Made by a program: the position numbers and the translations under genes. Below the pieces are notes generated by a model, which worked only from the letters and a program-made list of their open reading frames with translations, had not been told where the DNA came from and searched no databases. Positions 20,945-43,200 of a DNA stretch of 64,000 bases are shown piece after piece; the first letter of the stretch is position 1, and each line of letters starts with the position of its first letter. The DNA comes from Cyanophora paradoxa CCMP329 (taxonomy: Eukaryota; Plantae; Glaucophyta): contig QPMI01000222.1 of NCBI GenBank assembly GCA_004431415.1, positions 1-64,000 of the forward strand, written 5' to 3'.

Positions 20945-23190
20945 TCCTCCTCCTCCTCCGGGCCCGGGGTCCGGGCCCTTGGGGCTGGCTCTGACGGGCG
21001 GGGCGGGCGGGGCGGGCAGGGCGGGTCCGGGGGCGAAGAGGAGGGCCCCTTCGGGGGGCGGGAGGGGGACCCCGACGCGCGCGCCGCCGCCGAGGGCCTC
21101 TTCATCCGGTGCGCCCCCGGCCCGGCCCCGGCCCCCGCGGAATCCATAGATTCCCCATATAATCCTAGCTCGGGCCTCCATAGATGCACTCTAGAGACGC
21201 AGCGGCCCCGGCCCCGGCCCCGGCCCCGGCCCCGCCCCGCCCCGCCCCGCCCCGCCCGGCTTTGGAATCCATTAACTCCCTGGCGTCTCTTCGCATCCTC
21301 CGCTTTCTCCCGGCCCCTCTCTAGATCGGCGCCCCGGCCTCCATAGACTCTAAGAGGCGCGGCGCCATCGCCGTCGCCTACGCCGGCGCCTGTCCTGTTC
21401 TGTTCTGACCGGCTCCATAGATTTCCATAGATTTCAGAGGCCCCTAGCCTGCGCCCTGTTCTGTCCTGTTCTGTTCTGTTCTGACCGGGGCGGCAGGGCG
21501 GGGCTCGAGGTGCACGCGGACGCCAACACGGGCGACGGCCGCCCCTTCGAGGCGCGGAGCCTCCCCGACATCCCCAGGCTCGATGGGGAGGAGGCGGAGA
21601 AGCTGAAGAAGGAGGAGGAGGAGGTGAGCGCTGCCGTGTGGCGGGCTAGGCGGGTTCGTGTGTTTGGGCCGGTCTGGGCTGAAGCACTGGCCGGGGGGTG
21701 GGGCGGCAGGAGGCGGGGGAGCCGACCACGCCGCGGGCGGCGGGGCGGGCGGCCCCCGGGGCGGAGGCGGCTGCCGCGGCGGCCCCGCCGCGCACGCGCG
21801 CCCGGGCGCGGCGCGCCGGCGCCGGCAATGCGGCGTCCCCAGAGGAGGAGGGCCGCCGGCGACGGGTCAAGGAGGAGGAGGAGGAGGAGAAGGAGGAGGA
21901 GAAGGAGGAGGAGGGCGGGAAACCGGTCGCGAGGGGCCGCGGGGGCGCAGGAGGCGCTTCCAAGCGGCGGGCGCGGGCGAAGGGCGTGGAGGACGACCGC
22001 GAGGCGGGGGAGGGGGAGGCGGGGGAGAATTCGAAGAGGCCCAGGACCAGGATTCAAGGAAAAAGCAGATCATGAAGCTGAAGGATTTATTAAATCAAGC
22101 TATAAGTCAGGATTAACAGGACGTCGGCCAAGGGCCGCGGGGCCGGGGCCGGGGGAGGCTGCAGCTGGGCGGCCGAGATTTTAGGTGAAAGGGCAGTGGA
22201 GAGCACTAGGCGTGCCCGCGGAGGCGGGCGGTGTCCCCTCTAGCCGTCCCGGAGATCGCGCAGCGCGCGAACACGGACCGTGGCCTGGTCGGTTCCCCGA
22301 CCAAGGGCCGCGGGGCCGGGGCCGGGGGAGGCTGCGGCTGGGCGGCCGAGATTTTAGGTGAAAGGGCAGTGGAGAGCACTAGGCGTGCCCGCGGAGGCGG
22401 GCGGTGTCCCCTCTAGCCGTCCCGGAGATCGCGCAGCGCGCGAACACGGACCGTGGCCTGGTCGGTTCCCCGACCAAGGGCCGTCGACCAAGGGCCGGGG
22501 GAGGCTGCGGCTGGGCGGCGGGCGACGGCGACGGCGGCTCCCACTGCGCCGACGGCGGCCCCGCGGTGCGCCCCTTCGGGCCTGGGCTTCCGAATTGAAA
22601 GAGAACGCGAGGAGCAAGAGCTTTATAATTAGGAGATCTAAATTAAATGAGATCTAAATTAAAGAAGATCTCTGTAAAGGCTTTAGGAGGAGCAAGAGCT
22701 TTAAATCTAAATTAAAGGAGATCTCTGTGAAGGCTAATGATCAGCCACTGACAGCCCATATTGAGAGAGAAAGCGAGGAATTCGAAGAGGAGACCTAGAT
22801 CTAAAGGCGATTTGAAGGCTCATGATCGGACCATGATCGGCCGCGGTGCGCCCCTTCGGGCCTGGGCTTCCGAATTGAAAGAGAACGCGAGGAGCAAAGA
22901 GACCTGGATCTAGAGGCGATCTCTTTGAAAGGCTTACGATCAGCCACTGACATGTACAGATCTAGAGTTTGAAAGAGAAAGAGGCGAAGAAGATACCTAG
23001 CTATAGATGTAAAGGCTCATGGTCAGCGTCTCATGATCGGATCATGATCGGCCCCTGATCATGACTCAATAATTTGGGCGCGCGCGTTCGAATTCGTGCG
23101 CAGGCCCAGGCCCGCTTCCGGGCGCTGCTGGAGGAGGAGGGGAAGGAGGCCGCCATCCTCGGCCTCCTCGCGCCCCGCCCCCGCCCCTGA
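18519..23190 (+). CDS. Fpg/Nei family DNA glycosylase with Val N-terminus and acidic C-terminal extension
   Basis: MVEG|NSI|HRLAKAHREKLVGK...SPNGRFAEGA, HGKNLF, HFGMSG, H2TH MDQSCVAGIGNIYRAEIL, zinc finger YVYNHAACGRCG...YACARCQ. Exons after 20600 and the stop at 23188-23190 are less certain. Confidence 0.85.
22128..22515. repeat. 173-bp tandem repeat (~2.2 copies)
   Basis: CCAAGGGCCG at 22128, 22301 and 22474, with near-identical intervening sequence. Confidence 0.95.
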
Positions 23191-23587
23191 GCAGTTGCAA
23201 TTGTCTTCCTTCTTGTAATTATAATTAGTTATGGACTTCGAATTCCTTATATTAGTTGACGCTGGGACTTATATAGTTCTTCCTTATATAATTAGTTATG
23301 GACTTCGAATTCGGGCGCTCCTGGACCCCCGCCCCTGATCAGGTGTCTTCCTTATAACTAGTTATGGATCGGACTTCGAATTCCTTAGTTGACGTTGGAA
23401 AGGCTCGAAATTAATCTCGGCCTCCTGGCTCTCCTCGGCTGTCCTCGGCCTCCTGGCGCCCCGCCCCCGCCCCTGATCGTGATCAGGTATCCTCCTTAGT
23501 TATGGACTTCGAATTCGAATTCCTTAGTTCGTTGGGAAAGCCTTTTAAGCTCGAAAGCAATCTAGATACGGCCATCCTCGGGCTCCT

Positions 23588-23595
<8 letters not shown>
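23150..23595. repeat. Degenerate ~140-150 bp tandem repeats of the last-exon end, stop codon and 3' UTR
   Basis: CGCCCCTGA ends at 23190, 23338 and 23476. TAGTTATGGA(CTTCGAATTC) recurs, and GCCATCCTCGG recurs at ~23571. Confidence 0.8.
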
Positions 23596-23623
<28 letters not shown>

Positions 23624-24736
23624 ACTTGCGCCGCGCTACTAGGCTAGTGCTAGTGTCTCATGATCAGGCGCCGGCTTCACTGCCAGGCTGACTATAGCAC
23701 TGTGACATGAACGGCAGCAGCAGCCGCTCAGCTGCCGCTGAGCCTGCCCGGCGGCCAGCTTGAGCTCCAGCTGCAGGCTGTCAATGATCAATATTCATGT
23801 ATCGTGCCAACGTGGCACGGCCGCGCTGGTCGACGAGCCTCCGAGGCTCGTGATATCGATCAGTCAGATCTATAGCCGCTGAGCAATCCCGTACCATAGT
23901 ACCGACTGACAATATTAATGAAAGCGCTAGCCGGCGGCGCTACGGCAGTTGCGCAAGAAAATATTAAGATTAATTCATGATTGAAGTGAAGGACGCCATG
24001 TGACCAAAATTGAAGTGAAGGACGCCCGCAGTGAGATCAGTATTTAGTGACCATGACACGCGCGCGGCATGTCGACGTCATGATCATCATCGGAGTCATG
24101 GAATCGGAAGTTCAAAACCAGCTGATCGCTAACTGAACAGGATGAACAGGATTAGAAAGCACGTTGAATATTCTACTTTGCGTGACTGCCATGGCAAGCT
24201 TTACGCCTTGTTTGGATACTACAGCTACGTATACATGAAACTCGATCTCGCCGAGTCGGAGCTCGGGGCTGTAGTACAGTGAAGTGTGCATTGCCGGCTG
24301 GGTGCGGGGCCGCCGGGGCTCCACGAAAAATCGAAGAACAGCGGGTACCGACGCAAGTGCTAATTATAAGCAGCTAGAGGCTGCAGCTGCAGCTGCGTCG
24401 ATGTCGCGGGGCATGGCCCGCCAAAATCGCCGGCGAACTGGCATCGACACTATAGCTAATGATGTATACGCGACATGAAATCTGGAAAGGGACCCCTCTA
24501 GCTAAAACTACCCATGCGCTGCTGCTAGCTATCGCACGTGTACACGTGCACGCGGCGCGCCAACGGCGGCGCCGCGTACTCTGTACCGTACCCTACCAAG
24601 ACTTGCGAGAATAAAACGGAAGAGAAGAATCTACAGCTTCGCGGGCCGCGCGGAGCACTCCCGTGCCGATCGCGAGGTTCGCCGGCTCGTCGATGCGTCG
24701 GAGCAATCACAGCCGCGCGCGGGCCCGCCCCGCCCC

Positions 24737-27700
24737 TCACCTGCGAGTGCGAGGCGAAATCAAAAATTTCCAAGGTCACGTTGGTCAGAAGGGGAAATGT
24801 AAAGGTGGGGGCGGGTGGCAATCCAGCTTCCTACAGCTTACGGTCTTCCCAACTGCTTCGATTCCTACATTACAGCTACAGACACGCGCACTTTGCGGGG
24901 GCGAGGACGATGGCAGAGTTGGCGTCCATCTCGTTAAAGAGGGAGATCTAGAAGGGAGATGCTTTATTCCTATGGATACGTCTATAAAAGAAGCTGAAGA
25001 AAGTATACACAACGATGCGTTCCTAAAGCTTCTTAAAGCTTCCGAAAGCTTCTTTTAGCGCACTTTGCGGGGGCGAGGACGATGGCCGAGTTGGCGTCCA
25101 TCTCGTAGACGGCGCGCACGGCCGGCGCCTCCGCCAGCGGCACCACCTGCGCCGCCGCGGGGGCGAGGCTCGGCACGAGGAGAAGAAAGACTTTGAGGGA
25201 TCGGGGCTAAATTTTAGGTGAGAAAGGCAGAACTAGTGGAGAGCGCTAGGCGCGCCCGCGGAGGCGGAAGCGCCCTTCTAGGGGCCGGGGCGCACGTCGT
25301 AGGGGGAGTGCATGCCGGTGTCGACGAGGCGGCGCCACTTGCCCTCCGGCAGCCGCACCTGCGGACCAGACGCGTCAGGCGGACAGCTGCAAGCCTGAGG
25401 CCTGAGGGCGTCGTGGCGGCCCCGCCACCGATCCATCTCTAGAGCCCCCTCTCCCGGGCGGGTCGGAGTCGCAGCTGCAGGGCGGCTGCAGGCCCGAGGG
25501 CGCGGCGGCGGCCCCGCCACTCTTCCACCTCGACGGCACGTGCCGCGCCCCGCGTCCAAGGCAGGCTCTCTCATCTCTGCCCTCTGATCGCCCTCTCCGG
25601 CGGGGAGGCGCCGAGCCGCGGCCCAAGCCTAAGCCCTCTCATCTCATCTCCGCCCTCAAATCCCTCTGAAAAGGCGCACGGCGATATCTAATAGAAACAT
25701 ATAATTATGAGGGCGGCACCCCATGGGCCACTTCCTCTTGTATAAATTCAATCTCTGCCCTCTACTTGCCCTCTCGCCCCCCACACGTGGCGCCCTAAGC
25801 TTAAGCCCTCTCACCCCCCGCCCTCTCATTGCCTTCTCCGCCCTCTGAAAAGGCGCACGGCGATGTCGACGTGGTCGGCGTTGAAGGCGACGTAGAGCCT
25901 GTCCCCGGAGGCCTGCGCGGGGGGTACAGCGGCGTCGGAGATCCAGAGGCCCGGCGCGGGGCGGGGCGGGGCGGGGCGGGGCGGGGCGGGCGGGGCGGGC
26001 GGGCGGGGCGGGGCGGGGCGGGGCGGGCGGGCGGGGCGGCGCGGGCGGGCGGGGCGGGGCGGGCGGGCGGGGCGGGGGGCTCAGCGCGGTCGAAGTCTAA
26101 AGTGCTGAGCGCTAAAGGTGCTAAGGGAATGGGCGTGGCGCGGCGCCTGGCGTGGCGCGGGGGCAGGCGCTAAAAGCTTTAGTATGCTGAGCGAGCTCTG
26201 TTGAGCCAAGCTTGGCTTAAGTGTGTGAGGAGGGCGCAAAGGGGCTTCAGCTTGGTCGCACGCACCTCGTCCTTCAGGGTACAAGCGAGGAACTTGGACT
26301 CGGGGCCTGCGGGGCCGGGGCGGAGCTCAGCGGGGGGCGGGGCGGGGCGGGGCGGGGCGGGGCGGGGCGGAGACGTGCGAAGTCTAGTCCAATCTAGAGA
26401 TCTCTTCGAGATGGGAAGAGCGGGGCGGAAGGCGGGGGGCGGGGCGGACCCCACTGGGGGGCGGCGGGGTCGGCCGCCCCGTGCCACGTTGCCTCCTGCA
26501 AAGAGGCCGCGTCAGAGAGGGAGGGTCGACGCAGAGATTAAAGGGGGAGGTCTAAAGGGCCGAGAAAGCAGCAACTTCTTTTTATAAAGCAAGGGCCGAG
26601 AGGTCTATAAGAGCTGTTCTTTTTGCAAGGACGCCGCGTCAGAGAGGGAGGGAGGGCCGACGCAGAAATCAGAGGAAGGGGATCTAGAGGGCCGAGCGAG
26701 GGCTGCTCTTTTTATAAAAGCAGGAGCTGGTGTCTGAGTTCGCTAAGTTATGAAGCCCTGGAACGTTCTAAGAGTCCCGAGAGACGGGACGGGGCTGGGC
26801 TGGACTGGGCGGGGTGGGGAGGGGCGGAGGCTCTCAAGGGTCACTGTAAATGCTGGGGCGGACGGGGTACGCTTAAAGCCGCTATCAAGGCCGCGGGGCG
26901 GGGCGGGGCGAGCGGGGCGGGGCGGGCCTGGAAGACCGTGTCGAGGGTGAGGACGGAGTGAGGATAGAGGGTGATAGGATAGAGGCGAGGGAATTAGATT
27001 TTGAATGCTAGGGCCGGCGGTGCGCTTTAAAGCCGCTTCAAATTCAAGGCCGACCGAAGCCCGATAGGGCGGGGCGCTTCAGAGCCGCTCCGGATCCAAT
27101 GCTAGGGCCAAGGCCCCAAGGCGGGGCGGGGCGGGCGGGCCTGGAAGAATGTGTTTAGGGTGAGGACGGGGTGCGCCCGCCGCAGCGCCAGCACGCCCCG
27201 CGCGAAGTGGTACACGTCGCTCTGAGAAGAGGAGTAAGAAGAGGTGAGGGAGAGAGGAGGGGAGAGGAGGGGAGGGGGCACCTTGGAGCCGCGGACGGCG
27301 GCGAGCTTGTCCCACAGGAACCAGTTCAGCTCGTTGTCCTGCGGGGGGTACGGAGGAGTCAGAGGCCGGAGCGAGGGAGCGGAGCGGGCGGGGCAGAGGG
27401 AGGAGGCGAGCGAGAGGAGGGCGGGCGCCTGGCTCCATGCTCTCTCTCCAAATGACCTTAAAGGTCGCTGTAGCTAGGGCTTGCGGGACGGGGCGGGGCG
27501 GGAGGAGAAGAGAGAGCGCCTGTTGCTAGCTAGCGCTAGCGCGGCCTTCTAAACTCGCGGGGCGGGAGGAGAAGGGAGGGCGGGCGCCTGTTGCTAGCGC
27601 TAGCGCGGCCCTCTATAACTTCCAAGCTTCAGCAGAGGAGAAGGGAGGGCGGGCGCCTGGTTACAGCGGCCTTTAGGTTTTTAGCGCTAGCGCGGCCCTC

Positions 27701-28788
27701 TATAACTTCCAAGCTTCAGCAGAGGAGAAGGGAGGGCGGGCGCCTGGCCCCATGCTCAATCTCTAGGCGGCCTAACGTGCTCGTTCGTTCTAAGCTTCGG
27801 AGGAGAAGGGAGGGCGGGCGTGTGCGCCTGGTTCCAGGTGTTGTTGTTGCCGGACTTGGTGTGCCCGTACTCGTCCCCCATCAGCAGCATCGGCACCCCT
27901 GCTCAGATCAGATCAGATCAGATCAGATCAGAAGACGAGGGCGGCTTAGGTCCCTTGCGGGCGTGGCGGAGGTGCTAAGAGAAGCGGTGGCGCCCCCCGT
28001 GCTCTCGCTCTCTCGCGAACGCAAAGTGCGCTAATTATAACGCCCGGGGCGACGGGGGCGACGACGTACCCCGGGAGACGGCGAGGGCAAGGAGGAGGTT
28101 CTTGATCTGCGGAAGGAGGGGGTAAGCCGAGGGGGCGGGAGCGGGAGCGGGGGCGAGGCGGGAGGCGGAGGGCGAAGGGGCGTGCCTGGCGCTCGCGGAG
28201 GGTGAGGACGCCGACGGCCTGCGAGGCGTGCACGTGCAGCAGCGCCTCCCGCGTCACCGGGCCCTGCGCGCGCCGCGAAGCGGAGGAGATAATTATGGCG
28301 CTGGCTGACGTATGGGGCTGGCAGAGGAGATAAGTGTGGCGCTGGCGGGGCTGCGGCCTGGAACTATGGCGCTGGCTATGGAGCGGAGAAGGGCGGGGGC
28401 GGGGCGGGCCCGACCTCGTAGCCGCAGTTCCAGGAGAAGTTCTGGTCGTTCCCGTCCGCGTTGTTCTCCCCGTTCATCTCGTTGTGCTGCGCCCGCGCGC
28501 GTGAGTCCGAGGCCCCGACGTTTCTAGTTTTAGAAGGCGGCCGGAGCGGCCGGGGCTGGGCCCGGGGCTGGGCTGGCTCAGAGCTTTGAAGGAACCGGAG
28601 GGGAAACCTATCGGAGAGGCGCGGCGAGAGAGCAGGGGCCCGATGGCCTGCCTTGGCGGGAAACTAGGCGGGGGAAAGGGGCCAGGCGCGGGAAAGGCGG
28701 GGGAAAGGGGGCGTGCCTTGGAGTCGTAGGAGACGAGGTCGCGGAGGGAGAAGCCGTCGTGCGCCGTCACGAAGTTCACGCTGCACGG

Positions 28789-28823
<35 letters not shown>

Positions 28824-31800
28824 CACAAGTTAGAAGGTCGAAGTTCGACTCCTAGCTTCCTTGGCGAGAGGGCGGGCGCGGCGCGGCGCGGCACCTGAAG
28901 AGGGGCGAGTCGCGGTGCGAGTGCGGCTGGAGGCGCTGCGGGGCGAGAGGCTCGGTCCGATGGGACGGGGGCCGGGAGGGAGGGGCAGGGAAGGGGGGAG
29001 GAGGGATGGGATGGGTACCTGGCCCATCTCCTGGTACTTCTTCTGGACCGAGCTGAGCTGGTACAGGTCCGAGCTGCGCCGTCCCGCTCAGATCAGATCA
29101 GATCAGATCAGATCAGATCTGATCTGATCTGAGCGTAGAGGGGCGCGCGCGCCTGCCGGCGAGGCGGGTGGCCATGGGGCCGTTGGCGCCCGTCCCTTTG
29201 ATGAAGTTGCGCACTGCGCGGGGGCGAGTGAGCGAGGTTAGCGGGTGGCTTGGAGGCGGGCGCCGCCCGGCCGGCCGGCCTCTCTCGCTGGGTCCTGAGG
29301 GGGGACGCTAGCTAGCTAGCTAGCTAGCTAGCTAGGCTAGGCTAGGCTAGGCTCTGCTGCGCACTGCGCGGGGCGCACGGGGGCGCATAAGAAGAAGCTT
29401 AAGGTCAGGAGCGAAGGCTGTAGGGCGAGACCGCCCGGACCCCCTCCCGCGGGGTCCCGGAGAAAGCGCCGGGCTCGCTAGTTAGCTAGCTAGCTAGCCC
29501 ACAGCATGTCTGTCTGTCTGTCAGGAGAGCTCTGCGGCACCCCAGCTAACCGCCAAGCTAGCTGGCTAGCTAGCTGGCTAGCACCCCCAAGTCTCGCGGA
29601 GTCCCGGAGAAAGCGCGGGTCCGGGGACGGGGCCGCACTGGTGTCGCGGTAGTGGTCGTTCCACTCGAGCCAGCGCGCCCCGTACCAGAACGTCCCCTGC
29701 GCAGGCGAGGGAGGCCAAGCGCGTTTGTTTGGGAGGGCGAGCGCAGCGTAGGAGCAGCCTTAAGAAAGGGCGCCGGGCGTCTAGGAGGGCGCTGGTCGGT
29801 CGTTTCGTCGGCCCGGCGCGTTTGTTTGTTTTGTTTGTTTGGGAGGGCGCGGGAGCGGGAAGGGACGAGCGGACGGTCTTCATGAGGCCGTCGGCGTCCC
29901 ACGGCTCCGCGATCAGCCACTTGTCCTGCAGAGAAAGAAGGAAGGATTACTTTAGGCTTAGCTTCAGAGGCGCGCGGTGAGGGACGCGGGCGGCATCCGT
30001 CAGAGGCGCCGGGAGGCGTTAGACACCCCACCCCGTCCGGCCTCGCTCGTGATAAAACGTTCGCTTCAGATAACGTCGATAACAACCCCTCTCAGTCCTA
30101 GAATCGGGCACGGATGCACGGGCGGACGGACGGACGGGCCTTCAGATCCGGGGTGGAGAACTCCTCGGTATATTAGCGAGCGTTGTTTAATATAAACCTC
30201 ATTCGTCTCACTTATATATAAGTATTCGAATATTCGCTATATTCGCTATAACCCCTCTCAGGATTGAGGATCCCGGGCCTTCAAATCCGGCGTGGAGAAC
30301 TCCGGAGAGGGAGGGAGGGAGCGTTGCTTTAATTTTAGAAGTAGTTTAGGTTTGTTTAACATACACCTCAATCGCTTAAAGCATCACTTATACTTAGGCT
30401 TCAACCAACGTCCATCCCAACCCCTCTCAGGATCACGAACCTTCAAATCCGGCGTGGAGAACTCCTCGGTGATGCGCTTCAGGACGGGGGGCTCCTCGAG
30501 GGGCCGCCCGTCGGGCCCGCGCCCGAGGATGGGCGCCAGGTCGAAGCGGAAGCCGTCCACGCCCATCTCCAGCGCCCAGTGCCTGGGGGGGAGGGGGCGG
30601 GGCGAGATGTGAGGTAGTATTTATGAGAGAGGGAGGGAGGAAGGGATGGAAGGAGACAGCAGGCGAGCTAGCTTAGAGAGGGAACGGCATTTTGAGCTGT
30701 CAACGATGGAATCTAATCTGTCGGTGTGTCTCCAGCGCCCAGTGCTTGGGACACGGCGAGAGGGAGAGAACGAGATGCGAGATATTGGAGTCTAATCCGA
30801 TGGTCTGTCTTTGGGTTCTGCGTCGCGCGGAGTCGCAGATCATGAAGGTAAACCGAAAGGAGCTAAAACTGATAAAGGTAAAGGATAGAGAAGGTGCCGG
30901 TCTCCCAGTCGGATCGGTGGCCTCCCATCTTTAGACCTCGAGCCTTTATATTATGTGGGATGGGGGAGGCTCGGGCACCGGAGGGAGTCGCTGGAGGGGA
31001 GGGGAGGGTGGAGCGAGGTGTGAGGGAGCGAGGGAAGGAGATGGTGAGGCGGGCTAGCTTATAAAATTAGAAAGAGAACGGGATTTCGAATGTCAACGTT
31101 GTTAACGTTAACGTTCTAAGGCGGTCGTACGTGAGATGGGAGGGGATCGAGAACGCACCGGAGGGAGTCGCAGATCATGTCGGCGGCGACGGGGCCGTTG
31201 CAGTTCACCGTGTTCCCGCACCCTGCGCGCCGCGGGGCGGAGTCAGGTGAGCAGCGAAGCGAGGGAGCTGGGGAGAGAGCAGCGCGCCGGTGTAGTTGCA
31301 GTGGTATCCCTCGGAAAGGATGTAGTACTGCGGGGGGGTCAGCGAGCGTTGGTGCAGCGGCGCGTCGAGCAAGTCCTTCTCTCAGCGCGGCGCTCTCGAG
31401 GGCGCGGGGCGGGGCGGGGCAACAGCGGGGACGGGGGCGGGCCTGGGAGCGGGCGAGGGTCTCGAAAGACGTCCCCGAGGCGTGGTTGTACACCTGCGCG
31501 GGAGGCCCGGCCCTCAGCTGGAGGGCAAAGCGGGGGAGGAGGGGGGGGGGCGGAGGGGCGGGGGGGGGGGGGCGCACGACGTCAAGGATGACCTGGATGC
31601 CGGCGCGGTGCAGCTCCCGCACCTGCCGCGCCCCCCCGTTCAAGAACAAGTCAGGCGCGGCGGGGGGAAAAGGGGCCTCTCAGAGAAACGGGCTCAAGTT
31701 CTTCTAAGGTAAGAAAGCGCTGAAGGGCGCGCTTAAGCGTTTGTTATACCTCAAGGGCGCTTTCTAATAAGGCCTTAAGTGATTCTAAGATAAAAAGGGC

Positions 31801-34800
31801 GCACCATCTCCTTGAACTCGCGGACGGCGTGCCCGCGCCGCGAGGCGAAGCGCGACATCGGCGCGAAGAAGTTCTCCGTGCTTCAGGAGAAGGGGCGGAA
31901 GACATCAGATCAGATCAGATCGGATCTGAGAGGATCGGACCGGCCGGCTCACCAGTAGCCCCAGTAGTTGTAGAGCTGCTGGCCCGTGACCGGGTGCACC
32001 TGCGCTCACGCAAAACACATCGTCGAGTCAGCGCGGGGCGGAAGGGCGGCGCGGCGCGGCGGCGCCCGGAGAAGAAAAAGCGCGCGCCTTGGCGCAGTCG
32101 GTCTCGTCAAACTCGAAGGTCGGGAGGAGCTCGATGGCCGTCACGCCTGCGCCGGAGAAGAATATAAGAGGCGGGGGCTCAGCGCTAGATAGACAGATAG
32201 TTAGCTAGCCAAGCTCTGGGGCGGGGCGGACCGAGGTCCTTGAGGTGGGGGATGCGCTCGATGACGCCCAGGTACGTGCCCCGCTTCGCCTCCTGAGCGA
32301 GAGAACAGACGAAAGTGAGCGAAGTTGAACGAAGAAAGTGAGCAAAGAAAGCGAGCGATGAGATATAGCGGTAGAGTTGAGGTTAGGCTCTGCCCTGTCG
32401 GGCGAGCCTGGCACGCCTAAGATTAATACCCAAGGCCGCGCACACACCTTCATGGACTCGTCGGCGGCGGTGAAGCCGCGGACGTGCATCTCGTAGATCA
32501 CCAGGTCCTTCTGAGCGATCTGAGGGCGGGCGGTTAGTTAGGAGGAGGGAGGAGGGAGGGAGGGAGGGCGGGAGGGAGGGGTTACCTTTGGGGCGGAGAC
32601 GCCCTGCCAGTCGAAGTCGCTGCCGGCGCCCTGCGCCCGTGTGTGTGTGAGAGAAAGCCGGGGAGCAGCTGGAGAGCCGCCAGAGCCGAGTAGCCGGGGA
32701 GAGCAAGTGTGAGCCCCCGCGTGCGAGAGAGCCTAGACCGCGCATGTCCGAGCCTAGCTGCAAGCTTAGCTAGCGCCCGTGAGGGAGGGCCGGGCTCGCT
32801 TCCCTAGGCCGGGAGGCTGCTTCACTCTCTAGCTAGCTATATATAGCCAAGGCAAGCCGCGCACCGCGACCTCGACGAAGTACCGCTAGAGCTGAACAAC
32901 GGGGAGAGCTGGAAGGCCTTCTTTCTTAAGCTTCTTTTATAAGCTTCTAGATCTTGATCTTTATGATCTTAATCAACTCTGTTCGTCCCGGGCGGCTGGC
33001 GCACCGCGACCTCGACGAAGCAGCGGGGGGAGGTGTACGGGTGCAGCACGGGGAGCTCCGGCGCCGCCCCCGACGCCTGCCCAGCGAACGAGTGAGAAGC
33101 AAGAAGCTAAGTTAGAGGGCTAGGGGGCGGAGGCGGGCGGGGCGGGGCGGGGGCGGGGCCGAGCGGGCCTGAGAGACGAGGCGACGAGTGCCCCAGCCCG
33201 AGGCCGGCGGCGTGTCCAGCAGCCGCGCGTACGGGTCCGGCACGGGGTACTTGAACGTCGACGGCACGTACGCGTACAGCAGCACCTGGGGTCAGGTGAG
33301 CGGGGGCGGAGATGGCTGAGGTGGCTGAGGTGGCTGAGGTGGCTCGGGCGGCCCCGCGGACCTTGCCCTTGGGAAGGGGTACGCCCTTGCAGAGGACGTG
33401 CCACGTGCCGCCGCCGGCCGCGTCCTCAGCTGCGGCGCGCGCGCAGTCAGTCAGCCGGCCAGCCGAACGGCGGCGAAGACGTAGCCTTAGATGGAAGCAC
33501 TATAGAACACACGACGACAGCGGAAGAGCAGGAAGAGCAGTCGATGGGTGATGAAACCCAGTCTGGGGAGGGCGGGGCGGGGCGGGGTAAAGCGCGCACT
33601 GAAGTGCTTCTTGGGGTCCAGGTCGATGACGTAGTCGGGGGGGCACCTGCCGACGAAAGAAAAAAGAGCGATGAGAAGGCGGGAGGAGGGGTAGGGCAGG
33701 GAAGGGGCCTGGTGCCGGGGGGGGAAGGGGGAGGGGGGTACCGGACATCGTCGTCGAGGGAGTCGGCCGAGGTGTCCTCGGCGTAGAGCAGCAGCGAGAG
33801 GCTCGAGACCCGCTCGTCCGTCCGCACCTGCGGGGGTGCGGGGTGAGGGAGGGAGGGGAGGGAGGGGCGAGATAGGGGGCGGAGGGGGCGAGAGGGGTGG
33901 GCGGCTCCGGCATGGGATTCGACAGGTGGAGCGAGTGAGGGAGAGGCGGAATGGGATGGGATGGGATGGGATAGCCGGAGGCGCGAGGGCGGAGTGATGT
34001 GGGTAGGGGCGGGATAGAGGGCGGAGGAGGCGAGAGGGGAGGTGGCGGCGTGAGGGGAGGCGGAGTGGAATGGGATGGGATGGGATAGCGTGTACGGTGG
34101 GCGTGGATAGATGGGGGTAGAGCGGCGGCATGTCCTCGGCGCGCACGCGCGGCACAGGGGTACAGCGCGCGGAGATTGGGGTACAGCGCACCGCAAAGTT
34201 GATGCCCTCGCCGCGGGGCAGCACAGAGGCCCCCAGCGGGCGCGCCGTCCCCGGCTCGATCGCCCCGATCTGAGGGGGGGGGGATTGAGGGGGGGGGGGG
34301 AATGCGAAGGGGGGATACGGGGTGCGCGCGCCTCCTTGGCGGCCTTGCGAGGCCCCTCGAGATCCAGCCCGGGTAGGATCTCGGGCGCCTCCACGGGTAC
34401 TGCGAACGCGCGGGTCGGGATATTACCGGGGGGGGGGGGGGAAAGGAGCATAGACGACCGCGTACCCTCGCCGTCGGGGGTCGTGACGACGCGAATGTTG
34501 TTCTGGTTGCCGGCCGCATCCGTCTCGTTCGGCTGCGGCGAAACCTCAACGGGGGGCTACCGCAGCCCGCAGGGGGGTACAGCCACCTGCAGAATGTCGA
34601 TGCACCACTGGCCGTCCACGACGAACTGACGGGAGGGGGTTACACGATTCACGGGATGGGGATACGTGATTCTGAGAAAGAGAGGCGTGCCTTGAAACGG
34701 TGTACGCCGGGCGGGAGGCGCATGGTGCGCTTGAAGAGGCGGGGGGTATTGGGGTCGGGGAGGAGGGGTACGCGCTCGTCCCACTGCGCCGCAAAATCTC

Positions 34801-35661
34801 TTGGTGAGCCGCACGCGCGTAGGGGCAAAGGGGCGCGGCGCGGCGCGGGGGCGGGGCGGGGGACGACGCGGCGGGGGTACCTTGACGGTCGTGAAGGTGC
34901 CGACGAGGTAGACGTTGTACCCCCCGTGGTGCCACTCGAATGTCTCGAGGACGCCGAGGCTCGGGTCTGGCCCGGCGTACGTTTCGATGGGCGGGAGCTC
35001 GATGGGCGGGGGCGGCGCGGGGGGCAGCTGCGGCGAGAACTTGGGCGAGAGCATCGGCGGCGGGAGGGAGTGGCCCGCAGGCGAAGGCTTGCCCCCGGCT
35101 GGCGCCTGGGGCCGGCCCGGGGGCGAGCCCGAAGGTCCGGTCAAGGCAACGCTCGGGGGCGACGCCACGCTGTGGGACGGCATCTGAGGCGAGCGACCGG
35201 TCGGCCCGGGCGGCACGACGGCGGCCAGGGACGGGGAGATCGAAGGGACGACTTGCTGGCGCGGCGGTGTCTGCAGCCGCTGCGCAACGGGCGCGGGCGG
35301 GGCGGCCGCTCTCCCGGCGGGCTTCAGCCGGAACTCTGCGCGCGCGCGCGGTCAATCCAACGCCCCCGACTGTGCCCATGCGCGCAGCACTCCTAGGCCC
35401 TATCGCTCCGAGTCGCCGAGTGACCGGACCACTGCGCGCGCATGGTGCGGGGCCGCGCGCGGGGCGGGGCCCAACGCGCGCAGGGATCATCGCACCGTTC
35501 TGCCCAGCGTTCGCCTTCTTGAGGCGCGCAGCCGCCAGCTGTGTGTTGATCTCCTCGGTCCACTTGTCGTACGTGGACTTGGGGATCTTGCCCATGTCGA
35601 GCATGCTCTTCAGGCTCTCCTGGCGCGCCAGGAGCTCGACCTCTACCTCGTCGATGTCCAT
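24737..35661 (-). CDS. ISA: Isoamylase-type debranching enzyme (GH13_11) with N-terminal SHOCT-like helix, Pro-rich linker and AMPKbeta-type CBM48; ~40 exons
   Basis: Spliced motifs GINFAV, DPYAR, LVIYEMHVRGFT, RGTYLG, GVTAIELLP, NYWGY, ILDVVYNH, NYTGCGNTVN, GVDGFRFDLA, LIAEPWD, EWND, NFVTAHDGFSLRDLVSY, SWNCG, GVPMLLMGDE, LYVAFN. Catalytic D/E/D intact. Confidence 0.95.
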
Positions 35662-35782
35662 TTCTCGCGCTGCTCTCTCCGGCAACCCAAGCGGCGAGTT
35701 GTGGTGGCTTTGGCGCGTACCCGTCCGACAGCTGTCAAGTCAGCAGTTCCTCCGGGCAGCGCGAAACAGCTCACCGGGCGCG

Positions 35783-36137
35783 ATGGATGAGGAGGTACCG
35801 GGCGTCGAGTCGGGCGAGGTCCCGATGTACGCCCCGCCGGCGCCAGCAGAGCGTCGCCCACGCTCGATCCGGCCGGACGTGCCGCTGCGGAGCGATCTGA
35901 ACATGAAGTGGTGCTCCACGCGTGGCGAATGGGTGCGCTCCGCCTTATGTGGCGACCGACCTTGCCGCCGCCCGCGCTCACCCACGCGGCCTCTCCGCCG
36001 CGCAGGTGTGGCTGGGGAAGTCGTTCCACGAGTGGAGCTCGCACGCGAGGCGCGATCCTTCCAGCTGGAGCGCCCGGGCGGCGTATGAGGCCTTCCAGAA
36101 GGCGAAGGCAGCCGGCTACGACATCCCCTACGTGTGA
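35783..36137 (+). CDS. Hypothetical ~93 aa Trp-rich protein
   Basis: MDEEVPGVESGEVPMY...KWCSTRGEW|VWLGKSFHEWSSH...GYDIPYV*. GT-AG intron 35932-36005; divergent from ISA (121 bp). Confidence 0.6.
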
Positions 36138-40200: not shown

Positions 40201-43200
40201 GGCGGCCGCGGCTTTGGATACGGCTGCTTCCGCCTCCCACTCGGCGGCGACGGCGGCGCCGGCAACGACGCCCAAGGCTGCGGCCCCGGCGGCCCCGGCG
40301 GCCGTGGATGAGGCTGCGGATGCTTCTGCTTCTTCTTCTCTCTCGGCGGCGACGGCGGCGCCCACGGCCCCGGCAGCCGCGGTCGCACAGACGGCGGCGG
40401 CGACGGCGGCGACGGCGGCGACGGTGGCGGCTCCGGGGCAGACCCCGGCGGCCACTGCGGAAGCCGAGAAGCAAAGACGAGCGGCGGCCGGGCCTACGGC
40501 GGAGGCGGCGGCGGCTGCGGCTGCGGCCGCTCCGAAGACCGCCCCGGCGACCGCTGCGGAGACCGAGAAGAGGACACACGCAGCGCCGGGGCCTGCGGGG
40601 CCTGCGGGTTCTGCTGGGCGGCCGGCTGGCGCCCCGGCCCCCGCCCCTGCGGCGTCGGCGGCACCGGCGGCGTCGTCGGCGGCGATAGTGGCGGCGATCC
40701 ACACGGCGGCGGCTCGGACACCTAAGACCACCGCGGAAATCGAGGAGGGACACCAGATGGCGGCGGCGGGAGGACCTGCGGGGCGGGCGGGGCCCGCATC
40801 TGCTCCCCCGGCCCTGGCACCGGCGCCGCCGGCACCGGCTCTCGCAGCGGACACAGGGACGGCTCGGCAGCTTTCGCAGTCGGGTGCCGATGCGGCGCCG
40901 GCGCCGGCGCCGGCACCGGTTCCCGCAGCGGACACAGCGACGGTTCGGCAGTCTCCGCCGTCGGGGGCCGATGCTGGCCCGAAGGCGGCGGCAAAGGACG
41001 CTTCACCTGCCCCCGGACCTTCCCTCGTGCAGCCTTCGCAGTCGGGGGCCGACGCCGGCTCCAAGGCGGGTTCACCCGCGTCGGCGCCGGCGCCGGTCCC
41101 AGCCCCGGCCCCGGCCCCCGCCCCGCCGGCTCCGGCCCCCGCCCTGTCCCCGCCGACAGGCCCAGCGCCCGCCCGCAGCGCCGCCGACTTCAGCTCCGGC
41201 CCAAGCGCCGCCGGCCGCCGCTCCGGCCGCCCAGTCTCGTCCTCGACGCGCTCGCCGCCCCAGCGGCGCCGCCTGAGGCGGGGGCGTCCCCTGCCGCGTC
41301 GGCCGTCCCGTCGGCGCCACCAGTGCCGGCTCCGACCCCGGCGCCCGCGCCGCCATCAGCCGCGCCGTCCGCCCCGCTGCAGCCTTCGATACCGGCCCGG
41401 CGGTGCCCGCGCCCCCTTCCGCGCCCCCTGTTCCGCGTGCTCTTGCGGAGCCCGGGACGGCTCCGGCCTCTGTGGCGGCGGAAGCCTCTCGGGCCTCGGC
41501 ACCACCAGCGGGCGCGGCCTCCCGCCCGCCGCCGCCCCGCCGCCCCTGCCGAGCTGGCCCGGCCCGCGGCGGCCCTCCCGCCCGTCTCGGCGCCTTCGAG
41601 AGGGCGCCCCGCGTCCCCTGCTCCGAAAGCCGCGGCCTCTATCCCGCCCGCCACGTCTGCCCCGCCGGCGCCAGCGCCGTCGTCTGCCCCACCCGAAGCA
41701 GCAGCAGCAGAAGCAGCAGCGACCGCCGCCTCTTCCTCCGCCGCGCCCTCTCTTCCATCCGCCGCGCCCGAAGCAGCAGCAGGAGCAGAAGCAGCGGCGA
41801 CCGCCGCCACCCCTTCCGCCGCTACTCCGGCCCCCGAAGCAGGGACGGCGACGACGGCAGGAAAGGCGGCGGCAGCGCCGGCGGCTGTGGCAGCGGCGCC
41901 GGCGGCTGTGGCAGCGGCGGCTGTGGCAGCGGCGTCGGCTGCTGTGGCAGCGGCGCCGGCTGCTGTGGCAGCGGCGCCGGCTGCTGTGGCAGCGACGCCG
42001 GCTGCTGTGGCAGCGGCGCCGGCGGCTGTGGCAGCGGCGCCGCGGCTGCGGCAGCGGCGCCGGCTGTGCAGCGGCGCGGCTGTGGCAGCGGCGCCGGCGG
42101 CTGTGGCAGCGGCGCCGGCGGCTGTGGCAGCGGCGCCGGCTGTGGCAGCGGCGCCGGCGGCTGTGGAGCGGCGCCGGCGGCTGTGGCAGCGGCGCCGGCG
42201 GCTGTGGCAGCGGCGCCGGATGCTGTGGCAGCGGCGCCGGCGGCTGTGGCAGCGGCGCCGGCGGCTGCGGCAGCGCGGCTGGCGCGCGCGGCTGTGGCAG
42301 CGGCGCCGGCGGCTGTGGCAGCGGCGCCGGCGGCTGTGGCAGCGGCGCCGGATGCTGTGGCAGCGGCGCCGGCGGCTGTGGCAGCGGCGCCGGCGGCTGT
42401 GGCAGCGGCGCCGGCGGCTGTGGCAGCGGCGCCGGCGGCTGTGGCAGCGGCGCCGGCAGAGCCAAAGCCGACCGAGGCAAAGCCGGCAGAGCCCGCCCAA
42501 GCCGGCCCCGAGCCGCTGGCGCCCGCCGCGGCGGCACTGGCCACCGTCGCCGCCGCACCGGTAGAGCCGGCGGCAGCCCAGTCCGCGGCTTCCGCCGCCG
42601 CCGCCGCCCCGTCAAGGCTTCCCCCGCGGCGGCCCAGTCCGAATCAGCTGCCCCGGCTCAGGCGCCCGCACCCTCCTCCGGGCCGAGGCGCAACCCCTCC
42701 CACCCGTCCCGCCCGCCTCCGACGCGGCCCCTGCCGCCTCCCCTCGCCCCTACCCTACCCCTACCCCTACCCTTACCCCTACCCCTACCCCTACCCCTAC
42801 CCGTACCCCGCCGACGGCGCCGCCGACGCTGCCTCCTACGTGACGTCGTACCCCCCCTACTACGCCTACGCCGTCGCCGTTGCCACCACAGCCGCCGGCG
42901 CCGCCACCACAGCCGCCGGCGACGCGGAGTACTACCACGCGCCGCTACCCCCCGGCTCCAGGACCCCCCCTTGGATCCGGGACATGCAGGGGGGTACGCC
43001 GGCTGGGGCGGCGGGTGCGGAGCGGGCCGCGGCGCCGGCGTCGGTCGCGGCGCCGGCTGTCTCTGTGGCGCCGCCCGCGGAGGCTACCAGGGCCGGGAAG
43101 CCGACCCCGGCCCCGGCCCCGGCCCCGACCCCGGCCGCGGCTCCGCCCGTGCGGCGGACCCCGGCCCGGCTCCGCCCCGCGCGCCTACGGCATCGACGCC

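Follow-up and report, generated by a model that had tools for sequence, protein, structure and literature searches.

The long introns of the isoamylase (ISA) gene of Cyanophora paradoxa CCMP329 have probably grown by repeated local DNA duplications across one splice junction. In the analysed window (64,000 nt, positions 1 to 64,000 of contig QPMI01000222.1) the own splice junction was found copied inside 8 of the 11 ISA introns longer than 320 nt (I2, I12, I13, I15, I23, I25, I28 and I30; such internal copies are hereafter called ghosts), and in these introns it matched the interior far better than did 58 junctions of other introns. The best-kept tracts touched the copied junction in 10 of 11 cases (P ~1e-7 under random placement). 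Since the 29 ISA introns shorter than 240 nt yielded junction ghosts at chance level (2 of 58 tests, 1.7 expected), extra length and ghosts go together.

Gene model and junction copies

The ISA coding region, which includes a coiled-coil and starch-binding part at the N-terminus, was located by tblastn against P0002. Its curated model of 41 exons, separated by 40 introns, reads through to the stop; translation of the exon-edge model reaches the isoamylase C-terminus with no stop on the way. Between 25064 and 30582 the summed exon lengths equal the corresponding pieces of two spliced RNA contigs (X15 and X16), which also back the joints 25064/24740 and 31159/30582. The exon edges of I2 lie outside this stretch and were set by homology, while above 33285 the model is defined solely by coding score. 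The region and the eight introns are:

24737 to 35661, reverse strand: ISA coding region
24741 to 25063, reverse strand: intron I30, 323 nt
25359 to 25858, reverse strand: intron I28, 500 nt
26496 to 27140, reverse strand: intron I25, 645 nt
27339 to 27827, reverse strand: intron I23, 489 nt
29214 to 29638, reverse strand: intron I15, 425 nt
29926 to 30440, reverse strand: intron I13, 515 nt
30583 to 31158, reverse strand: intron I12, 576 nt
32631 to 33004, reverse strand: intron I2, 374 nt

All 12 repeat pairs listed by an earlier, sequence-only reading of this DNA were recovered at the coordinates given there, and its main claim, that the long introns are made of repeated local copies of their own junctions with very different ages, was borne out. 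The majority of copies are genuine tandem duplications (127-213 nt) whose start lies 0-43 nt within the exon, with homology over the whole unit (60-77% identity) in I12, I13, I15, I23, I25 and I28. The reading's tandem copying of single units applies to these, but not to three events (I30, I2 and an array in the neighbouring Nei gene), in which a new spacer without homology to the flanks lies between junction duplications of 22-49 nt. The copied tracts include 43 exon letters in I30, 33 in I25, 25 in I13, 16 in I2, 13 (donor) and 17 (acceptor) in I12, 9 in I23, and 6 each in I28 and I15.

Among the tandem cases, the donor tract of I28 (25841-25864) is identical to its ghost (25662-25685, 24/24), and homology extends over the whole 179-nt unit (25751-25867 against 25573-25688, 68%, z 12.4). 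Both ends of I25 are copied: the donor side (27133-27173, 33 exon nt) matches a ghost at 26920-26960 (36/41, unit 213 nt), and the acceptor side (26497-26525) one at 26624-26652 (27/29, unit 127-131 nt), where the acceptor AG is now AA. This second repeat (26506/26633) had been read as an exon-edge copy; it exists, but its tract reaches only to the acceptor, with no exon letters in it. The array of I23, in units of 64-87 nt, runs from 9 nt within the exon to 2 nt short of the acceptor and contains four ghost copies of a GC-type donor. Approximately 2.8 units of 147 nt cover 29208-29619 in I15, ending 6 nt within the downstream exon, with an intact ghost acceptor (29358-29373; pair 29208/29358, 16/16); an internal pair (29448-29469 and 29595-29616, 21/22), also taken for a junction copy (29601/29454), is real but entirely intronic. 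The real donor tract of I13 (30419-30465) has ghosts at 30250-30303 and 30084-30164, the triplet 30084/30250/30419 sharing 12 to 15 exact letters plus an exon-end block of 26-31 nt; the copies are arranged as A' B A B A, with unrelated sequence after them, and both ghost donors are GC, not GT. In I12 the donor tract (31155-31171) recurs at 30975-30991 (17/17) and the acceptor tract (30566-30587) at 30729-30750 (21/22, CAG changed to CAA), while the spacers 30588-30728 and 30992-31154 are mutually homologous (z 10.1). The third I12 copy claimed earlier turned out to be real and exon-only (30829-30844 against 31164-31179, 16/16), and a loose end of an RNA contig joins 30583 to 31161 onward.

The spacer-type events are differently built. 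The real donor tract of I30 (25058-25106, 43 exon and 6 intron nt) matches its ghost (24886-24934) at 48 of 49 positions, with the ghost donor GTGCGC intact, and the AT-rich spacer between them (24935-25057, 123 nt) has no homology to either flank (z 2.3 and 0.4) and no excess of 10-mers shared with the surrounding 6 kb. The donor tract of I2 (32999-33020, 16 exon and 6 intron nt) recurs at 32859-32880 (22/22, offset 140), and neither flank contains a clear homologue of the spacer 32881-32998; judging by its flanking AG and GT, this ghost could form an in-frame 21-nt exon. The corresponding features of the Nei gene, together with an element shared by the two genes, are:

22125 to 22519, forward strand: Nei array, 173-nt unit in 2.28 copies, acceptor position putative
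22561 to 23103, forward strand: Nei intron, donor tract with ghost
25204 to 25267, no strand assigned: dispersed element of ~60 nt within ISA intron I29

The array has the layout A (49 nt), B (124 nt), A, B, A', with the last A continuing into exon-like sequence; its two full units are the same but for 2 letters, which fall in A, and the spacers are identical. In the Nei intron the donor tract (22561-22617) is identical to its ghost (22841-22897, 57/57, z 24.8), within a 280-nt higher-order unit composed of 83-114 nt sub-units. The dispersed element recurs in both Nei-array spacers (22171-22227 and 22344-22400) at 80-82% identity and in the same genomic orientation; it gave no Rfam match and no fold signal, and the 25060-25259 bin shows raised k-mer depth.

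Assembly error is unlikely to lie behind the junction copies, because contigs of the DNA runs X1 and X4 carry the structures of I30, I28, I13 and the acceptor side of I12 without differences from the window (X4 covers 24886-25086 in I30; contigs of both runs span 29365-30859, thus covering I13). The two runs are filed under different studies, and either may be the sample behind the window assembly; in each of fourteen runs, 93% or more of the sampled words were present. Long reads with short-read correction underlie the reference (PMC6704402), and short-read contigs break at the microsatellites present in several introns, yet given these matches we attach practically no weight to the idea that the repeat-rich introns are an assembly or polishing artefact.

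Proposed route of intron growth and the fate of ghost sites

We propose two forms of growth, read as insertion or duplication on grounds of parsimony. In one, a segment of 127-213 nt, reaching from 0-43 nt within the exon into the intron, would be duplicated in tandem; in the other, some 120 nt of new DNA would be inserted, flanked by a junction duplication of 22-49 nt, and the unit so formed could then multiply if the two junction copies underwent unequal exchange. Both I13 and the Nei array start and finish with a junction copy, as unequal exchange predicts. Both forms may go back to a staggered double-strand break that was filled in and rejoined, with or without captured filler DNA, a route with the caveat that known fill-in duplications measure tens of bases, not 130-210. 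Such events would be tolerated because splicing keeps to the outermost site, so that the extra copy and the spacer leave with the intron.

We further infer a selective filter, under which ghost donors, being downstream of the used donor, would remain intact, and ghost acceptors, which lie upstream and so would be encountered before the used acceptor, would often be disabled. Checked site by site, all 12 ghost donors have GT or GC in the same context, and spare splice sites do arise, in agreement with the sequence-only reading; of the three ghost acceptors, one keeps AG and the other two have each lost it by an identical G-to-A change. The RNA contigs between 25064 and 30582 use the outer sites only (I2 and the donor side of I12 lie outside, and rare ghost use would escape contigs).

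Decay along the copies is uneven: identity by unit position is 91% in the first 20 nt beside the exon-side breakpoint and then falls to ~57%. This peak, like the 48/49 match in I30 beside an unalignable spacer, is unlike a single duplication followed by uniform decay, and since constraint acting on the real copy can account for no more than a two-fold difference, the scheme also needs gene conversion or a later, second event. The better preservation of junction tracts relative to the remaining unit would also be expected if ghosts were kept for a function, either recursive splicing of over-long introns at AG/GY or U1 retention against premature cleavage. All 12 ghost donors are still donor-like, and the ghosts split the long introns into ~165-nt segments, which are as long as the mid-length ISA introns (114-182 nt) and well above the mean intron length of the Cyanophora genome (86 nt, PMC6704402). 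The ghosts of I13, I23 and I25 have the recursive layout, AG followed by GT or GC; those of I30, I28, I2 and I12 lack it, as the exon end there is not AG and recursion is impossible. No intermediate of stepwise splicing appears in the RNA contigs, in which such a product would not be visible anyway. As the conserved tracts (16-57 nt) are far longer than a U1 site, with ends resembling copy boundaries, and the ghost acceptors are disabled rather than kept, we regard a retained function as very unlikely.

Unit size and source of the added DNA

Unit length is 165 +/- 21 nt (n = 13). Of the 10 nearest offsets, 7 fall within 140-180 nt (P ~3e-5 against random placement), which upholds the clustering reported by the sequence-only reading. 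By length, the 40 ISA introns form three classes (60-97, 114-182 and 323-645 nt), and a single intron lies between 183 and 322 nt. The gene shows weak GC autocorrelation along its length (0.08-0.10 at lag ~167), and donors in its compact parts are spaced 145 +/- 19 nt apart. Other tandem periods in the window are 41, 81 and 129 nt, and elsewhere in it one direct-repeat pair lies 98 nt apart.

The same reading took the copied unit to be one nucleosome repeat or Okazaki fragment, with breaks or nicks in adjacent linkers, or mis-joined lagging-strand pieces, leading to chromatin-sized intron growth. The clustered offsets and length classes speak for it, as do the lack of small-unit junction ghosts in short introns, the near-equal geometry of the two youngest events (49 + 123 nt and 49 + 124 nt) and the fact that tandem duplications from paired nicks are already known (PMC8355091). 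Yet those youngest events (I30 and the Nei array) consist of an insertion plus a 49-nt duplication, not of 172 contiguous copied bases, GC autocorrelation is weak, and a chromatin-sized step would fit the offset cluster but not the units of 64-87 nt (I23), 127, 213 and 280 nt, nor the other spacings in the window. Moreover, gene geometry can give a similar figure, given the donor-to-donor spacing of the compact parts. We thus rate this origin of the unit as improbable. Tolerance alone fails to explain a preferred 165-nt step, because smaller units would be tolerable as well. Tentatively, and as something we consider possible though rather unlikely, a size-specific, transposon-free process may add steps of ~165 nt at junctions, set by chromatin or the lagging strand, with the ghost junctions held near the sequence of the real ones by gene conversion or selection.

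If the spacers were small mobile elements (Introner- or MITE-like) inserted at junctions with target duplication, the duplication-spacer-duplication layout of three events would follow; the recurrence in I29 of the ~60-nt element from the Nei-array spacer, and a 21-nt motif common to the I30 and I2 spacers (in opposite orientation), point the same way. Against this, the ISA spacers have no extended match elsewhere in the 64-kb window (the ~60-nt stretch common to the Nei-array spacer and I29 excepted), so no transposon is implied, and their k-mer depth sits at the single-copy baseline (in the few microsatellite-free bins). Searches within the window brought up no multi-copy near-identical family apart from that element, in keeping with the transposon-free growth claimed earlier. 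No terminal inverted repeats were noticed by eye at the I30 spacer ends, the flanking duplications are variable in length (16-57 nt) where those of Introners measure 3-9 nt (PMC9860276), and whole-unit homology to the adjoining intron marks most events as local copying. A mobile origin of the spacers is, in our opinion, extremely unlikely, and we retain local duplication across the junction.

Relation to known systems

The earlier suggestion that such a system has never been described is too strong, given the boundary-spanning repeats of human F7 (PMC1557585) and the intron sequence derived from tandem duplication (PMC3265369). The repeat of F7 intron 7 crosses the exon boundary, its units beginning in the exon, so that the real donor is followed by identical pseudo-donors; the most upstream donor alone is used and the extra copies are silent (PMC1557585). 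Here, too, the repeat unit at the intron edge includes exon letters and the splice site, the pseudo-sites keep the consensus (all 12 donors, one of three acceptors), and the RNA contigs between 25064 and 30582 use only the outermost site. Whereas F7 involves one locus and a 37-bp unit (PMC1557585), here at least 9 introns of two neighbouring genes are affected, with units of 127-213 nt, acceptor-side copies and, in some events, new spacers.

There is a likeness to the AGGT tandem-duplication origin of introns, shown experimentally (PMC3265369) and represented by the potato RdRp case (PMC4974935), in that splice signals are duplicated locally and splicing then takes out the DNA that they enclose; but there a new intron arises within an exon, while in ISA existing introns were lengthened, and every intron with such an event, in ISA as in Nei, would be there even if the extra unit were not. 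Fill-in of staggered breaks by Pol alpha-primase produces tandem duplications of overhang size, their length being the distance between offset nicks (PMC8355091), and the junction duplications flanking spacers here (16-57 nt) are similar in size to the 43-nt overhangs of that experiment. That work concerned engineered breaks in mouse and human cells (PMC8355091), and units of 130-210 nt and captured spacers of ~120 nt exceed it. Introners likewise add intron sequence to the genes of aquatic protists, and the preference of some for nucleosome linkers (PMC9860276) echoes the size argument; they form multi-copy families with target duplications of 3-9 nt and often inverted ends, and create new introns (PMC9860276), unlike the Cyanophora spacers, which are single in the window (that of the Nei array excepted), have long flanking duplications and lie in pre-existing introns.

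The class of mechanism (boundary-spanning repeats, staggered-break fill-in) is therefore known; what is new is density and step size, as intron growth by junction copying is unusually dense in this ISA gene and has a preferred step. If the size-specific process were real, intron length in Cyanophora would be quantised, and the spare donors would be more than debris.

The isoamylase gene and its exon model

The minus-strand interval 24737-35661 was resolved as one gene (isoamylase, hereafter ISA). Conserved isoamylase motifs are present in its exons, which align along P0002, an isoamylase-like protein of 955 residues; one exon matches, at 100%, the 292-residue EukProt Cyanophora paradoxa model tig00000955_g5785.t1. 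The exon model was obtained as a path of coding score and splice sites, followed by curation against homologues, and the joined coding sequence was translated as a reading-frame check, with no stop found before the C-terminus. Two spliced RNA contigs (from runs X15 and X16) placed on 24860-30859 have piece and gap lengths that sum exactly to model exons 25064-30582, and their loose ends support the joints 25064|24740 and 31159|30582; the exons at 31159-33285 are based on homology, and those above 33285 on the coding model only. Splicing of the last intron brings the stop codon together (AA|G TGA; 24737-24740 and 25064-25065), so that the final exon is almost wholly 3' untranslated.

Of the 30 donors modelled in introns 24741-33168, nine have GC instead of GT, most of them after AG (e.g., AG|GCCCGC, AG|GCGCGC, AG|GCACGC), and five of the nine fall in the part of the gene confirmed by RNA contigs. 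GC donors usually account for roughly 1% in eukaryotes, and their share in ISA is far above this level. The genome as a whole has 67.6% GC and 9.2 introns per gene, and its introns average 86 bp (PMC6704402). Grouped by length, the ISA introns comprise 18 of 60-97 nt, 10 of 114-182 nt, one of 230 nt and 11 of 323-645 nt. The public 292-residue model of this gene reads into retained intron sequence and reaches an early stop inside intron I13; automatic prediction seems to have been misled by the long introns that carry junction copies.

Copies of splice junctions inside the long introns

The sequence-only reading had listed repeat pairs in which an exon edge and its splice site recur within the adjoining intron, and all 12 pairs were recovered (identities 36/41 to 57/57). 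We searched each junction (up to 40 exon and 30 intron letters) against intron interiors, and term a copy of an intron's own donor or acceptor inside that intron a ghost. In eight numbered ISA introns (I2, I12, I13, I15, I23, I25, I28 and I30) the own junction scored 16-43.5, against a mean of 8-10, never above 23, for the junctions of other introns. Across the 40 introns of the whole ISA model, ghosts occur in 8 of the 11 that exceed 320 nt. Of the other three, intron 34191-33828 holds an internal tandem array that stops 3 nt away from the acceptor, I27 consists of a GGGGC microsatellite, and in intron 35495-35099 the search found nothing. The 29 introns under 240 nt gave 2 hits in 58 junction searches, where the same test leads one to expect 1.7; thus, ghosts and extra length go together. 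Moreover, all but one of the 11 best-kept tracts reach the junction that was copied (~1e-7 under random placement).

The copies are also present in DNA contigs: those from runs X1 and X4 (from different studies, either of which may be the source sample) are identical to the window across I30, I28, I13 and the acceptor side of I12, and at least 93% of sampled words were present in 14 runs. A comparison of the two DNA runs gave no difference that could indicate strain polymorphism. The roughly dozen events in this one gene are of mixed age, with copies from 98-100% identical to barely recognisable.

The ratio of donor-side to acceptor-side events is about nine to four. Ghost donors are found downstream of the donor in use, and all 12 still have GT or GC in the same context; ghost acceptors are found upstream of the acceptor in use and would be encountered before it, and in two of three CAG has become CAA. 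The splicing outcome is known for most ISA events, and over the RNA-covered stretch 24860-30859 the contigs use the outer sites only. This agrees with human F7 intron 7, in which the first unit of a repeat crosses the exon boundary and the pseudo-donors were shown experimentally to be silent (PMC1557585). The I2 ghost (32865-32885) lies between AG and GT as a predicted in-frame 21-nt exon repeating seven protein residues, and a naive gene finder picked it up. With its naturally occurring rows of identical donors and acceptors in tandem, the locus could be used to test site choice by a spliceosome tuned to introns of ~86 nt.

Forms of duplication and a possible route

Self-alignment of each long intron told the kinds of event apart. 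I12, I13, I15, I23, I25, I28 and an intron of the neighbouring plus-strand gene (Nei) are tandem duplications, homologous over the whole unit (60-77% identity), that begin 0-33 letters inside the exon and reach into the intron. In I30 and I2 the junction copies are separated by a spacer of ~120 nt, beyond which stands a near-perfect junction tract (48/49 and 22/22, respectively). The Nei array (22125-22519) has a 173-nt unit in the layout A B A B A', where A is 49 nt and B 124 nt; as its first piece is the junction piece and not the spacer, it is not a plain duplication of one contiguous segment. Insertion of a spacer, with 49 nt duplicated at its flanks, and subsequent unequal exchange can give this layout. 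I13 is laid out similarly (A' B A B A, with unrelated sequence beyond).

Self-alignment gave no match between the I30 spacer and either of its flanks, nor any clear homology between the I2 spacer and the sequence beside it. The possibility that the I30 spacer was pieced together from nearby sequence was rejected (with the 3 kb on each side it shares no more 10-mers than expected), as was the idea of a spacer as a decayed exon copy, since homology to the exon-side flank was lacking. A transposon origin fared no better: searches of the spacers against the window and each other gave only a 21-nt motif and an element of ~60 nt. Apart from the Nei-array spacer, none has another copy within the window; their k-mer depth equals the single-copy baseline in the few microsatellite-free bins, and no inverted ends were noticed by eye in the I30 spacer. 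Repeats noted in the window include the following.

24935-25057 (I30) and 32881-32998 (I2): unrelated spacers sharing the 21-nt AT-rich motif (20/21) in opposite orientation
25204-25267 (ISA intron I29), 22171-22227 and 22344-22400 (Nei-array spacers): the ~60-nt element, 80-82% identical, in one genomic orientation, so that one gene has it in sense and the other in antisense
27903-27927, 29088-29132 and 31905-31929 (three ISA introns): partly palindromic TCAGA microsatellite with very high genome-wide k-mer depth
565-9900: gene of ~3.6 kb in three tandem copies, containing a coding repeat of 21 nt whose copy number varies
41875-42457: long, apparently coding 21-nt minisatellite that dominates a naive offset histogram of the window and needs masking

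The palindromes AGATCT, TCTAGA and AAGCTT recur in the AT-rich cores of many ISA introns, in which arrays of (GGGGC)n and (CTAG)n are frequent as well. The bin holding the ~60-nt element has raised k-mer depth, to which a neighbouring microsatellite may contribute; the element has no Rfam match and folds no better than shuffled sequence. Intronic RNA genes were likewise set aside, the Rfam search over 21500-36000 giving only below-threshold, microsatellite-like miRNA hits.

We infer a route in which offset nicks at breaks, filled in and rejoined, would leave tandem duplications of overhang length; such a duplication, of 43 nt, has been shown (PMC8355091). The junction duplications of 16-57 nt around a spacer would suit the size of an overhang, provided that the filled ends had trapped filler DNA between them. 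Whole-unit copies of 130-210 nt would require nicks at that distance from each other, or else unequal exchange among junction copies already present. From the exon-side breakpoint, identity in successive 20-nt bins falls from 91 to 78 and 70, then to ~57% (random ~40% with the same aligner). This gradient is owed partly to the way in which the events were found and partly to constraint on the real copy, but neither accounts for the 48/49 tract of I30 beside an unalignable spacer. Gene conversion from the real junction and younger short-patch copying are candidates for the well-kept tracts, and selection for working ghosts is a weaker one.

Size of the step and place among known systems

The copied unit measures 165 +/- 21 nt (n = 13). 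The clustering of offsets claimed by the sequence-only reading was borne out, seven of the ten nearest offsets falling in 140-180 nt (~3e-5 against random placement in the same introns). Small-unit junction copies were not found in the short introns, though they would be tolerated there; therefore, the preference for a 165-nt step is real in ISA, but it is unexplained. The same reading took the unit for one nucleosome repeat or Okazaki fragment, and its interpretation as a whole is only partly supported, while the observation is confirmed. Against nucleosomes or Okazaki fragments as the source of the step, GC periodicity (used as a nucleosome proxy) gave an autocorrelation of only 0.08-0.10 at a lag of ~167, and the compact donor-to-donor spacing in ISA is itself 145 +/- 19 nt. 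Units of 64-87, 127, 213 and 280 nt are also present, and elsewhere in the window tandem periods of 41, 81 and 129 nt occur together with one direct-repeat pair 98 nt apart.

Intron lengthening by duplications that cross a junction has precedents, in F7 and in the model of intron origin by tandem duplication (PMC3265369), and ISA is a dense, multi-age example of this route. The ISA events lack the defining features of Introners (PMC9860276). None of the papers searched describes junction-duplication intron growth in Cyanophora. Transposon-free intron growth is rarely seen in action. If the 165-nt step were genome-wide and equal to nucleosome spacing, it would tie chromatin or replication structure directly to gene architecture; otherwise, ISA would remain a clear example of local duplication that is tolerated, though an ordinary one.
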